This document shows, one piece after another, positions 48,641 to 51,978 of a stretch of DNA of 60,485 nucleotides (positions are counted from its first letter, which is position 1; each line of letters opens with the position of its first letter). The stretch covers positions 1-60,485 of the forward strand of contig NW_021832613.1 of the NCBI RefSeq assembly GCF_006345805.1. Direction: 5' to 3'. The stretch is from Octopus sinensis. Lineage: Eukaryota. The position numbers and the translations under genes are program-made. The notes below the pieces were generated by a model. The model was given only the letters and a program-made list of their open reading frames with translations. It did not search any database and was not told the origin of the DNA.

Positions 48641-49677
48641 TTTGGTAGAGTATGGAGGACTGGTTATGTGGTCATGCTGCCTCTAATTTTTATTTCATCC
48701 CCCTGCAATGCTTCTAGATGTCTCACCAACGTATGTAATGTTCTTGTCTTTACAAGCACCCCACAAGAAAATCTCTGTCTATAGATGAGTAGAGGCGAAT
48801 TATATCCATTCTACCCGGACACAACCTGTGAGGTCTTCAGAGGGCTTGCAGCTATTGATTCTACTGAGGAGATCCTTCCTGCTCACAAAGACGTGTGTCA
48901 CCATTTCCGTGAGTGGTCGTAACACCTGCTAGAGGAAGGAGTATAATTACTGTTGTCCCTTTTTAAATTGAAGGACTCATGAAATTGTAAGATGTATTCG
49001 GAGTCAGGATTTTGCTCGATGAGTCGACTCTACTTTTTGGGGTTTGTAAAATATTAATGTTGATGATAATAATAATAATGATAATGATTTTTTTTTTAAC
49101 GGAAAGATGTTTGGGGCACCAAGTTTTGACAGACTAAATATAAAGAGGGGCCTTCACTGTGGGCTAGCTAGCAAGCTGGTCTTCAGAGAAGGGACTCCTG
49201 GTTAGGTGGGAGGGGCATTCTCCAGCCCTTCAGGGTGGGCACGTATGGATCCTAGAGGGAAGTTCAGTGCCCATGAAGAGAAGTGGGAGTTTTAATTAGT
49301 TAGCGGAAAGGCGGCAGACGAGTAACAATGCTTCTTTATCATTAACTCTGATCACTTCATAAACAGCCCATTTCACTTGTGGCAACTTTGCTCTGCGAAA
49401 TTCTGGATGGCATCAACTCACTACTCTGGTCATGTTATGCCCACTATATTTTCGTTTTGGCTAGCTCCATTCCCATTAGCTTCTAACACCTTCCAACTCA
49501 ATCTACTTATGCAAGCATGGACAGTAAATGCATGACAATGGTAGTGATATAAAATCTGCAATGTTGAATTACTTATGTTGGTCAACTATCCAGTTTTATC
49601 TTACTGCTTCTTTTCCTATTTCAGAATATCACAACATGTTGACATGAAGGAAATCTCTACATTCAGAAGTGTCTTTG

Positions 49678-49729
49678 ATATTCTCATCACCTAGAGGAAG
49701 ACAGCATATTTATAAGGAGCATTCATGAA
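49678..49729. repeat. 52-bp inverted repeat, left arm (right arm 51927-51978)
   Basis: atattctcatcacctagaggaagacagcatatttataaggagcattcatgaa; 50/52 identical to the reverse complement of the right arm. Confidence 0.95.
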
Positions 49730-49790
49730 GATTTTCGTGTGTAGTTACAACACCATTTGCAAAAAATGAATTACAACAAGTAATGCAAGG

Positions 49791-51764
49791 TTATGGCTTC
49801 TCTACTGCATGTGTATGCGTGTGTCTATTCAACTGATGCCTTTGAGAAAATGACTCACCACAGATCTCACAATGATAAGGTTTCTCTCCTGTATGAAGGC
49901 GATTGTGAGTAACCAAATGACTATTTCGAGAAAACGATTTTCCACAGATATCACACTGATATGGTGTCTTTCCTGTATGAACACGTTTGTGCTTAGTCAA
50001 TTGACTCTTACAAGGGAGTAACTTACCACAGATATCACAATGACAAGGTTTCTCTCCTGTATGAGTGCGATTGTGACTAACAAATTGACTATTACGAGAG
50101 AATGGTTTACCACAGATATCACAATGGTAAGGTTTCTCTCCTGTATGAATTGCTCATTCCGGTCGGCCACAAAACAGTGTGCTTTCACTCTTGATGACGT
50201 CATACACTTACTGTCTTCTGTGTGTGCAAGGTGCTTTGAAATTGACATCATTATTATTAATTAGACTAATTAGTTATCGGTCTGTGATTTGTAGTTTTTG
50301 TCTGAATACGGTAAGTTGTCAATAAGTATTTTATATATAATGAAATTATTGTATACGGTGCTCAGGTGCACCACAACTTGTCAGAAAGTGCGTATAAAGC
50401 ATATGCAGTAATGTACAAATGTCTGGAAAGTGAACAGTGTATGAGTCAGATACATGCTTGCGTGTGTATAGAGGGAAGGAGAAAATCAGGTGTAGTGTTG
50501 GCGAATCTCAGAAAGCATGGAAGTTTTGAAGGATGCAGTGCTCCGACAACTAACAACTGATGCTGGAGGATTGTTCCATGCTTCAGCAACTCTCAGCGTG
50601 AAAAAATGTTTCCTGAAGTCATGGGAGCTGTGCTGTTTTCTGCCTTATTAAATATGTCCACGGGTGTTTGACAGGTGGAGTTTGAAAAGGTGTTCAGAGT
50701 TATTGTTCGTAAGATGGTTAATAATTTTATGGGTGTCTGCCAAGTCAGCTGCCAGACGTCGGAGTTTCAATGTGTCCATGCCCAGGGAAGCAAGGCGTTC
50801 AGGATATGGCAAATGCCTGATGGAGGGTATTCTTTTGGTTGCGTATCGCTGAACGGCTTCCAGACGATTGATATCCTGGGCAAGATAGAGGTTCCAGAGC
50901 AGTGATGCAAATTCCAGGTGAGGTCTTACCATAGCTATATAAAGCCGCAGATTGATAGTCGGAGAGCGACTCACAAAGGATTTGGTGAGTGATGCCAAGA
51001 CACCCTCAGCCTTCTTGACAATTTTAGCGATGTGTTTTGTCCAACGCAAATCACTGTCGACAATAACACCCAGGTCACGTTCACATGAAGATTTTTTGAG
51101 ACTAGTGTTGTGGAGGGAGTAGGTGGACGCTGGGCTTCTCCCAAAATGCATGGTGGTACATTTGTCCACAGCCAGCTTGAGTTGCCAGTCCATGATCCAC
51201 TGCTGCATTTTGTCCAGGTCTGCTTGCAATAGAGATCTATAGTGTACAGGATCTGACCTCTTTCTTTCGAGGTACAGCTTGATGTCATCTGCATATTTCA
51301 GCACTGTGGCATTCTTTAAGTTGGCATCTATGTCATTAACATATGCAACAAATAAAAGGGGGCCAAGAACAGATCCCTGTGGTACACCAGATGTCATCTC
51401 ATAGGGCGAAGAGTGCTGTCCTAGAACTGTGACAACCTATTTTCGGCCGAAAGTAAAGGACTTCAACCAGTTATAGAGTTCGTCTCTTACACACAATGCG
51501 GAGAGCTTCACAATGATATGGCCTCTCACCTGTATGAATGCGATTGTGATCAACCAAATGACTATTATGAGAGAATGATTTACCACAGATCTCACAATGA
51601 TATTGCTTCTCTCCCGTATGTGTACGTTTGTGTCTAACAATGTCACCACTGTAAGAAAATGATTTTCCGCAGATATTACAGTGATATGGCTTTTCTTCTT
51701 TATCAAGATTTTCTGATTCACTTAAATTATTCATCATGAGTGAATTACTTATCATACACTTCAC
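49791..51764 (-). pseudogene. C2H2 ZNF-E (more distant paralog): 2 N-terminal fingers (51507-51764) and 4 C-terminal fingers (49791-50150), split by a CR1 insertion
   Basis: [31 protein letters not shown]...TGERPYHCE | [26 protein letters not shown]...QRHQLNRHTHTHAVEKP*. Confidence 0.85.
50333..51506 (-). mobile_element. CR1-clade LINE, 5'-truncated
   Basis: SGVPQGSVLGPLLF, YADD, ERDLGV, VRPHLE, LEAVQR; 3' UTR ends in an AT-rich tail. Confidence 0.9.
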
Positions 51765-51926
51765 AATGATAAAGTGTTTTTCATTTCCATGAATACATTT
51801 CTGTTCACTTTTGTCACTTCATTCAGATAACAATTTAATGCAATGTTTCTTCCATACATTCCACAGAAAGAAAAATATTCCGCTGTTCCTTGTTATAGAC
51901 TGTATTTATATACAGAGGTAGACTTA

Positions 51927-51978
51927 TTCATGAATGCTCCTTATAAATATACTGTCTTCCTTTAGGTGATGAGAATAT
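51927..51978. repeat. 52-bp inverted repeat, right arm
   Basis: ttcatgaatgctccttataaatatactgtcttcctttaggtgatgagaatat. Confidence 0.95.

Follow-up and report, generated by a model that had tools for sequence, protein, structure and literature searches.

Inverted duplications at the ends of inverted segments have been described in Drosophila, where they occur at 17 of 29 inversions (median 321 bp, shortest 46 bp, range to 1.9 kb) and where, in 12 cases, one breakpoint only is duplicated (Ranz et al. 2007, PMC1885836). In these staggered-break (isochromatid or chromatid) inversions, non-repetitive sequence stands in inverted copies exactly at the segment ends (PMC1885836). Small inverted, duplicated pieces with short overlaps at the joints are also found in non-recurrent human rearrangements ascribed to FoSTeS/MMBIR and microhomology-mediated end joining (PMC2583991). 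Recurrent human inversions by NAHR involve large inverted segmental duplications, kilobases long and nearly identical, that flank an interval in duplication-rich gene clusters. For recombination to be efficient, roughly 130-500 bp of uninterrupted identity are required, and rare events at matches below 50 bp have been recorded in human cells between closely spaced repeats (PMC2583991). In bacterial phase variation of the Hin, Gin and Fim type, the orientation of a segment between inverted repeats determines whether a gene is connected to signals upstream of it.

We analysed a 60,485-nt stretch of the Octopus sinensis genome (contig NW_021832613.1; hereafter, the window) in which sequence coding for C2H2 zinc fingers (ZNF) lies on the - strand between two inverted 52-bp arms, downstream of an acceptor-like site on the + strand (Table 1). 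The original prediction had described it as a ZNF coding region flipped against its own acceptor, and had proposed either (a) a staggered-break inversion that created the arms or (b) recombination between pre-existing arms that toggles the gene ON and OFF. The locus resembles the Drosophila inversions in the apparently non-repetitive sequence placed in inverted copies exactly at the segment ends, in a duplication of 52 bp that falls within their 46 bp-1.9 kb, and in what appear to be a single duplicated breakpoint and a gene cut at a breakpoint. It differs from them in that the inverted piece measures only 2.25 kb, compared with a chromosomal segment, in its cephalopod host, in the short overlaps at both joints, and in an ancestral order deduced from paralogs in the window and not from an outgroup. 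With FoSTeS/MMBIR and microhomology-mediated end joining it shares a non-recurrent, small inverted duplicated piece and joint overlaps of 4-5 nt; these mechanisms and a staggered break with fill-in are indistinguishable from the sequence alone.

Table 1. Features of the flipped zinc-finger locus, with positions in the window
Feature	Position	Strand	Description
Splice-acceptor-like site	49607-49624	+	Polypyrimidine tract then CAG; AG at 49623-49624
Segment A	49625-49677	+	Presumed 5' untranslated start of ZNF exon
Left arm (copy B)	49678-49729	+	Inverted match to right arm
Seventh finger, PCITCCNSFFANGVVTTHENLH	49725-49790	-	After stop codon; cut at last His by left-arm junction
C-terminal ZNF piece	49791-50150	-	Four C2H2 fingers; stop TAA 49793-49791; Pfam zf-C2H2, zf-H2C2_2, finger profile
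186-nt filler	50151-50336	-	Between LINE fragment 3' end and ZNF
5'-truncated non-LTR retrotransposon (LINE) fragment	50337-51511	-	C-terminal half of reverse transcriptase, YADD motif
N-terminal ZNF piece	51508-51755	-	ATG 51755-51753, two C2H2 fingers (Pfam zf-C2H2), runs into retrotransposon
ZNF exon 5' region	51756-51926	-	Decayed fingers with stop codons to ~51837, then unique sequence to right arm
Right arm (copy B')	51927-51978	-	Adjoins ZNF 5' region; inverted match to left arm
First (TA)n-rich microsatellite block	51975-52035	.	Tandem Repeats Finder; zone reaches ~56.7 kb

The finger-coding sequence between the arms runs on the - strand, opposite to the acceptor, as had been predicted and as borne out by translation, Pfam (PF00096 and PF13465) and the finger profile; its period is 84 nt. 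Such an orientation is not odd in itself, since the ZNF arrays of the window occupy both strands. The flipped ORF ends after 94 residues, within an insert of 1357 nt that splits the array and that was absent from the earlier account of the cassette. When the N- and C-terminal pieces are joined without this insert and one copy of a 32-nt in-phase repeat (27/32 identical), a clean ORF of 191 residues with six fingers is recovered. The flipped ZNF is thus a pseudogene with an interrupted reading frame, dead in either orientation. The insert consists of a reverse-transcriptase fragment (Pfam RVT_1, E=5.5e-16, profile positions 117-194 of 205) and 186 unmatched nt. The fragment is 93% identical over 1179 nt to an O. 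sinensis copy that extends further 5', and its assignment to the non-LTR elements draws on reverse-transcriptase homology, 5' truncation and the presence of a family copy elsewhere. Its 5' junction overlaps the ZNF sequence by GTGAA; on its other side, retrotransposon homology stops at 50337 in two O. sinensis copies, and the filler has no match in the window or in two Octopus loci.

Both ends of the array are decayed. Beyond the stop codon, the profile matches the seventh finger on the - strand to 49735, its register runs on via CTT CAT into the left arm, and BLAST alignments with paralogous fingers start at 49725. At the other end, weak profile matches lie in or near the 5' region (51774-51623 and 51837-51734), and no acceptor-like site was found on the - strand from this region up to the TA repeat. 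A candidate U-type acceptor and start inside the segment itself (ATATTTTTCTT...ATG...GGAAGAA) is no more than a weak lead, its alignment being non-significant: the score was reached by 10/300 and 43/500 shuffles, and a further comparison gave p = 0.2-0.27. Exact-match look-ups of seven window ORFs gave no counterpart, and protein searches with two ZNF queries returned generic ZNFs only, the best Octopus matches being 52-59% identical; the unique N-terminal region of the gene had no match in the protein search.

The acceptor predicted on the + strand is present: its sequence (cttcttttcctatttcag/aatatcaca) has pyrimidines at 14/15 positions followed by CAG, and only 10 acceptor-like sites of equal strength exist in the window, both strands counted. 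Among 38 other sites compared with it, the top three matches are at 10730 (unit U1), 36209 (unit U3) and 18396. The acceptors of U1 and U3 stand ~425 nt upstream of ZNF start codons, and 18396 is a fragment site that matches them. The best alignment covers 38/49 nt (~78%; p ~0.003-0.009 against background segments). That the acceptor is as in the other units holds modestly: its three best-matching sites belong to ZNF units but, being mutual copies, amount to a single witness. We consider that 49624 may be an acceptor of the ZNF-unit type, a modest likeness to one family of three related copies. The first ~25 nt of segment A also align with the sequence following U-type acceptors. Segment A has no reading frame through to the left arm and no finger homology on either strand by finger profile or alignment, and the profile detected no + strand finger array after the acceptor. 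A decayed finger spanning A and B, which would have revealed the original arm, was considered on either strand and discarded, the finger profile being empty there and alignment scores at background (p = 0.41 and 0.47). Two finger-like motifs can be picked out by eye: TGTGATAT, read on the - strand at the acceptor, and another CTTCAT, spaced 81 nt from the one in the last finger. We judged them to be due to chance.

The arms lie exactly where predicted and, aligned as inverted copies, agree at 50/52 positions, with mismatches at arm positions 17 (G/A) and 28 (C/T) that leave perfect blocks of 16, 10 and 24 bp. They bracket the flipped segment exactly, their similarity ending sharply both outside and inside. 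A search of the 60-kb window for the 52-mer with <=3 mismatches found the two arms only (expected number 0.00, from 100 shuffles), 120 kb of O. sinensis and O. bimaculoides sequence (two loci) contained no further copy, and its halves, scanned against the JGI metagenomes, had no match. The flipped-cassette locus has a 13-mer (TATTTCAGAATAT) in common with the unit at 17412 (-) and a 15-mer in common with an O. bimaculoides locus; both were treated as compositional because no similar sequence follows them. An Rfam scan of the window found no RNA family, and BLAST reported an inverted self-match at 48292-48629 (66% identity) that is absent from a separate repeat search.

Both joints show short overlaps. 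On the left, the overlap is 5 nt long (ATGAA), as 49725-49729 can be read either as arm or as the Leu-His codons that end the - strand pseudo-finger; the inner 8 nt of this arm, TTCATGAA, form a palindrome. On the right, the outer ATAT of the arm (51975-51978) merges into (TA)n. Long AT repeats are fragile, and the TA block is presumed to have been the fragile site at the right breakpoint. The overlaps would point to microhomology-mediated joining or template switching over plain end joining.

Of the two options of the original prediction, the staggered-break inversion is the better supported, by the misoriented ZNF-type acceptor, the - strand array devoid of an acceptor and the arms located exactly at the segment ends. 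We consider it probable that one inversion duplicated 52 bases at one breakpoint, by a staggered break or by a microhomology-joined or replicative variant of it. The original unit would have lain on the + strand in the order acceptor, A, B, ZNF 5' region, six fingers, decayed fingers and TA-rich repeat. A single rearrangement would then have made two breaks, one at the TA-repeat edge, immediately beyond the last decayed finger, and the other, staggered or its replicative equivalent, around segment B, and the 2.25-kb piece would have been rejoined backwards. With the second break staggered by ~52 bases, B would have been filled in at both ends, where it now has opposite orientations, and the new joints would have used ATGAA on the left and ATAT on the right. 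Segment A would still keep its original orientation. In agreement with this reconstruction, the + side retains only the acceptor, A and B, and the - side only B and the gene body. Flipping the segment back would, as predicted, place the ZNF 5' region directly after the left arm, at an acceptor-to-ATG distance of ~279 nt compared with ~425 nt in the other units. The identity of the acceptor to its U-unit relatives (~78%) is close to that of the array to the U-unit arrays (~72-75%), as expected if both had once belonged to one unit. Collinearity of A, B and the 5' region with the U units beyond the acceptor was sought but did not emerge, neither B (p = 0.91) nor the 5' region (p = 0.20) having a significant counterpart in the other units; the A/B and B/5'-region joins are presumed to be original. 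The inversion would have severed the finger-coding body from the acceptor and from anything upstream, and the retrotransposon fragment would also have broken the coding sequence, either before or after it.

Other histories could have produced inverted arms around a ZNF gene. Inverted duplications of ZNF units are common in the window (e.g., 11515-13443 versus 32623-30691 and 30813-32567 versus 38544-36800), and the 96% identity of the arms falls within their range. These large inverted segmental duplications, together with ZNF genes on both strands, raise the prior for a locus made of two convergent paralogous copies, duplicated tail-to-tail, of which the left one lost all sequence after B and the right one all sequence before B, the 52 bases being their surviving overlap. 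Such an origin is nevertheless unlikely: it takes three events against one, independent deletions would leave remnants exactly complementary except for 52 nt only by luck, and we found neither a second acceptor or segment A beyond the TA repeat nor a second finger array on the + strand after the left arm. No inversion would be needed if the ZNF had always been on the - strand and a break, for example at the edge of the TA repeat, had been repaired by copying ~52 bases, inverted, from 2.2 kb away through polymerase-theta-type or replicative template switching. Templated insertions are known at repair junctions, the TA repeat could have served as a priming site for the outermost ATAT of the arm and, were the left arm the original one, the in-register run of the last finger into it would need no coincidence. 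This repair is doubtful all the same, since it makes a coincidence of the ZNF-type acceptor facing a - strand ZNF, leaves the - strand gene without an acceptor of its own and has the patch land by chance between the 5' region of the gene and its upstream flank, precisely where the inversion would have put B. Such patches also tend to be shorter and to be copied from templates much nearer the break. The sharp ends of the arms would suit the terminal inverted repeats of a DNA transposon with ZNF cargo inserted at a TA site, where a palindromic TA or ATAT target duplication might go unseen because the outer arm ends read ATAT. We deem a transposon very unlikely: the Octopus sequence (60 kb + 120 kb) and the metagenomes hold no other copy of the 52-mer, the tested ORFs in and around the segment have no transposase domain, there is no non-palindromic target duplication (the flanks, TTTG and ATAT, differ), and the 5-nt in-register overlap of finger and arm would be a coincidence. 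The probability is likewise very small that the assembly misoriented the segment or joined it chimerically beside the TA repeat; the right arm does abut a ~4.7 kb TA microsatellite that is hard to assemble, but the left junction lies in ordinary unique sequence, both arms are present whichever way the middle is placed, and they differ at two positions, in contrast with fold-back read artefacts, which are perfect palindromes.

The remaining reading is option (b), in which pre-existing arms recombine with each other and so invert the cassette reversibly, toggling the gene on and off. A gene body set between inverted repeats and preceded by a fixed acceptor has a suitable geometry, alike to that of the Hin, Gin and Fim-type systems and of NAHR inversions, but an invertible ZNF cassette finds no support here and we regard it as extremely unlikely. 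Since the gene is broken by the 1357-nt insert, neither orientation yields a six-finger protein. The arms, drifted by two mismatches, match perfectly over 24 bp at most, well short of what efficient recombination usually requires (PMC2583991). The repeats of human NAHR, by comparison, measure kilobases. Unlike the bacterial switches, the segment has neither an intact gene nor a detected recombinase: of the 23 listed ORFs of >=40 aa that overlap 49500-52050, the 13 scanned with Pfam contained only reverse-transcriptase and C2H2 finger domains. A switch would also require that the repeats arose separately and that the segment then flipped an odd number of times, which makes at least two events compared with one for the inversion. 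We give just as little credence to residual, low-rate recombination between the arms in the germ line or soma, with both orientations coexisting, and to the milder idea of a + strand transcript whose two arms pair as a 52-bp double-stranded RNA stem attracting RNA editing or silencing. If low-rate recombination were true, the acceptor would be connected now to sense, now to antisense ZNF sequence, making the locus an animal analogue of a phase-variation cassette.

Single inversion with duplication of one breakpoint being the preferred explanation, the arms look like an inversion scar and not a working recombination site. As the scar of one old inversion, and not a reusable switch, they would therefore belong to ordinary genome decay. 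What is known of gene regulation is unchanged by a dead cassette with no sign of a working switch. The locus would instead be a clean, small-scale case of gene loss in ZNF clusters, in which a finger array is parted from its acceptor by an inversion whose signature is a 52-bp inverted duplication. If this inversion is true, breakpoint duplication of the Drosophila type would operate at kilobase scale and in a cephalopod, one of the breakpoints here being a TA microsatellite.

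The two arms, inverted 52-base copies on either side of the flipped ~2.25-kb piece, are reverse complements at 50 of their 52 positions, and alignment within the window bears out the original prediction that they bracket this piece. They are the only two copies of the 52-mer in the window when up to three mismatches are allowed, and dinucleotide-preserving shuffles yield none. Similarity between them ends abruptly on the outer and inner sides alike, uninterrupted identity consists of blocks of 16, 10 and 24 bases, and, to judge by the two mismatches, they are diverging and not being kept alike. 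The inner eight bases of the left arm (TTCATGAA) are palindromic.

Also as predicted, the finger-coding sequence between the arms lies on the - strand, with its fingers, start codon and stop codon. Read on that strand, the array meets at 51508 a retrotransposon fragment in which the reverse transcriptase is reduced to its C-terminal half (RVT_1 profile positions 117-194) and which shares 93% identity with a copy from O. sinensis. Past the TAA there is one further recognisable finger, whose closing Leu-His codons (CTT CAT) enter the left arm. If the 1357-base insert is removed together with one of the two copies of a 32-base repeat in phase with the fingers, an uninterrupted six-finger protein of 191 residues results; the present reading frame stops after 94 residues, and the ZNF gene is dead in either orientation of the segment. 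The 32-base repeat flanks the entire insert and can be read as a long, diverged target-site duplication or merely as adjacent finger linkers. The 186 bases preceding the resumed array may derive from the flank of the source element, carried along with it.

Coordinates of the arms, the gene between them and other features of the window
Feature	Position	Strand	Remarks
ZNF array	~11.15-12.5 kb	+	
ZNF array	~16.0-17.3 kb	-	
ZNF array, fragment	~18.7-18.9 kb	+	
ZNF array	~31.7-32.6 kb	-	
ZNF array	~36.6-37.7 kb	+	
Left arm	49678-49729		
Four fingers and TAA stop	TAA at 49793-49791	-	array resumes after 186 bases
186 bases	50151-50336		between retrotransposon 3′ end and resumed array; no match in any sequence searched
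Non-LTR retrotransposon fragment, 5′-truncated	50337-51511	-	Pfam RVT_1
ATG and two good fingers	ATG at 51755	-	
Decayed fingers with stop codons		-	after ~90 unique bases, before ATG
Unique sequence, ~90 bases		read on -	directly inside right arm
Right arm	51927-51978		
32-base repeat	51508-51539; 50119-50150		27/32 identical, in finger phase
(TA)n-rich microsatellite blocks	51975-56700		~4.7 kb; one block of 1.9 kb
510-bp repeat	44099-44607; 7548-8056; 33808-34316	+	96-97% identical
510-bp repeat	1-201	-	96-97% identical
~125-nt dispersed repeat	44759-44882; 5614-5734; 18969-19087; 60364-60482		87-90% identical
Inverted duplication pairs	23516-27288/42822-39067; 13587-15632/27311-25258; 11515-13443/32623-30691		87-96% identical
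Direct duplication, 1.67 kb	6463-8131/32721-34391		99.6% identical
Tandem-repeat block	8132-9406		inserted in U1

The acceptor-like site at 49623-49624 (+ strand) has 14 pyrimidines in 15 positions followed by CAG. Only 10 equally strong sites occur in the window, both strands counted, so that the chance of one per 100-base stretch of one strand is below 1%. Three of the nine others lie on the + strand (10730, 18396 and 36209) and are mutual copies, two of them (10730 and 36209) preceding by ~425 bases the start codons of U1 and U3, two + strand ZNF units, and the third within a fragment copying the U1 upstream region. Among 38 acceptor-like sites, these are the ones with which 49623 aligns best (best alignment 38/49 bases; p ~0.003-0.009 against background segments), which modestly supports its description as a ZNF-type acceptor like those of the other units; its use in splicing is predicted.

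The two strands are complementary in content. The + side carries the acceptor-like site followed by segments A (53 bases) and B (52 bases), and no finger array was found downstream; the - side carries B and the gene body, and no acceptor-like site was found between the TA repeat and the ATG. This is the outcome expected if one inversion took place with a break staggered by 52 bases at one of its two breakpoints, which would convert X-B-C-Y into X-B-C'-B'-Y (primes marking flipped versions). Short overlaps occur at both joints that the inversion model counts as new. At the left, the final five bases of the arm (ATGAA) are also the end of a finger, so that BLAST alignments to paralogous fingers begin at 49725; at the right, the outer ATAT of the arm blends into the first (TA)n block of a ~4.7-kb TA microsatellite. 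These overlaps suggest that the ends were joined through microhomology or by replicative template switching, a variant of the model with plain fill-in and end-joining. With the ancestral order inferred from paralogs in the window, a single inversion is probably the best explanation. Segment B and the 5′ region of the gene have no significant counterpart among the other units. A decayed finger in the A-B region, which would have identified the original arm, was rejected on either strand, as a finger profile gave no hit and alignment scores were at background. Of 29 inversions in the Drosophila melanogaster group, 17 have unique sequence at their breakpoints duplicated in inverted orientation (median 321 bp, shortest 46 bp), and in 12 of these a single breakpoint region is duplicated (PMC1885836); a 52-base duplication at one breakpoint is consistent with these figures.

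Two convergent paralogous copies, each trimmed by deletion to leave a 52-base overlap, would yield an identical picture, but this requires three events plus chance complementarity, and neither a second acceptor nor a second array was found; we consider it unlikely. Similarly improbable is a 52-base templated repair patch without inversion, which would explain the in-register finger without coincidence while making the ZNF-type acceptor coincidental and leaving the - strand gene without one. A transposon with terminal inverted repeats is very unlikely: no other copies were found in the window or the Octopus loci searched, the ORFs tested in the segment and its surroundings include no transposase, and there is no clear target duplication. 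Misassembly of the segment has an equally slight probability, the two arm mismatches speaking against a fold-back artefact.

The original prediction had also proposed a reversible ON/OFF cassette toggled by recombination between the arms. This switch is unsupported and extremely improbable, since flipping the segment back would restore no gene and the arms fall far below the identity length for efficient homologous recombination where it has been measured. In mouse cells, recombination dropped 20-fold when the stretch of perfect identity was shortened from 232 bp to 134 bp, the identity needed in human meiosis is estimated at ~300-500 bp, and recombination below 50 bp is rare and observed between closely spaced repeats (PMC2583991). 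The ORFs tested within and around the segment yielded no recombinase domain, the mismatches indicate drifting arms, and a separate origin of the repeats and an odd number of flips would also be required. Of the two options in the original prediction, the single inversion is the better supported.

The AT-rich window (38% G+C) contains a cluster of C2H2 ZNF arrays interspersed with LINE and LTR retrotransposon remnants, and since arrays occur on both strands, either orientation is normal there. The nearest database proteins are Octopus ZNFs of only 52-59% identity and the retrotransposon copies are 93-97% identical to copies in one O. sinensis locus, which makes an octopus or a near relative the probable source; look-ups of window ORFs, protein homology searches and metagenome scans revealed no second occurrence of the locus. 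Large segmental duplications, direct and inverted, are frequent; the inverted ones contain LTR-retrotransposon gag-pol copies and entire ZNF units, indicating repeated rearrangement of the cluster. The 1.67-kb direct duplication is much younger than the surrounding duplicated units, and the tandem-repeat block in U1 is an insertion relative to the near-identical copy upstream of U3. The - strand array at 15980-17412, with a midway frameshift and an in-frame stop between acceptor-like site and first finger, is probably another pseudogene. The 510-bp repeat is A-rich at its 3′ end, contains a donor-like GTAAGT (44515) and lies in the same orientation upstream of U1, U3 and the 49623 acceptor; it may supply these units with promoter and first exon, or may be a retroposon, and, being far more alike between units than acceptors and arrays, is a young copy. 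The ~125-nt repeat, also present in O. sinensis and O. bimaculoides loci (L001 23664-23787; L002 14377-14505), is probably a SINE. We regard the feature between the arms as a pseudogenising rearrangement of an ordinary and already known type, on a small scale, in what is probably a cephalopod ZNF cluster.
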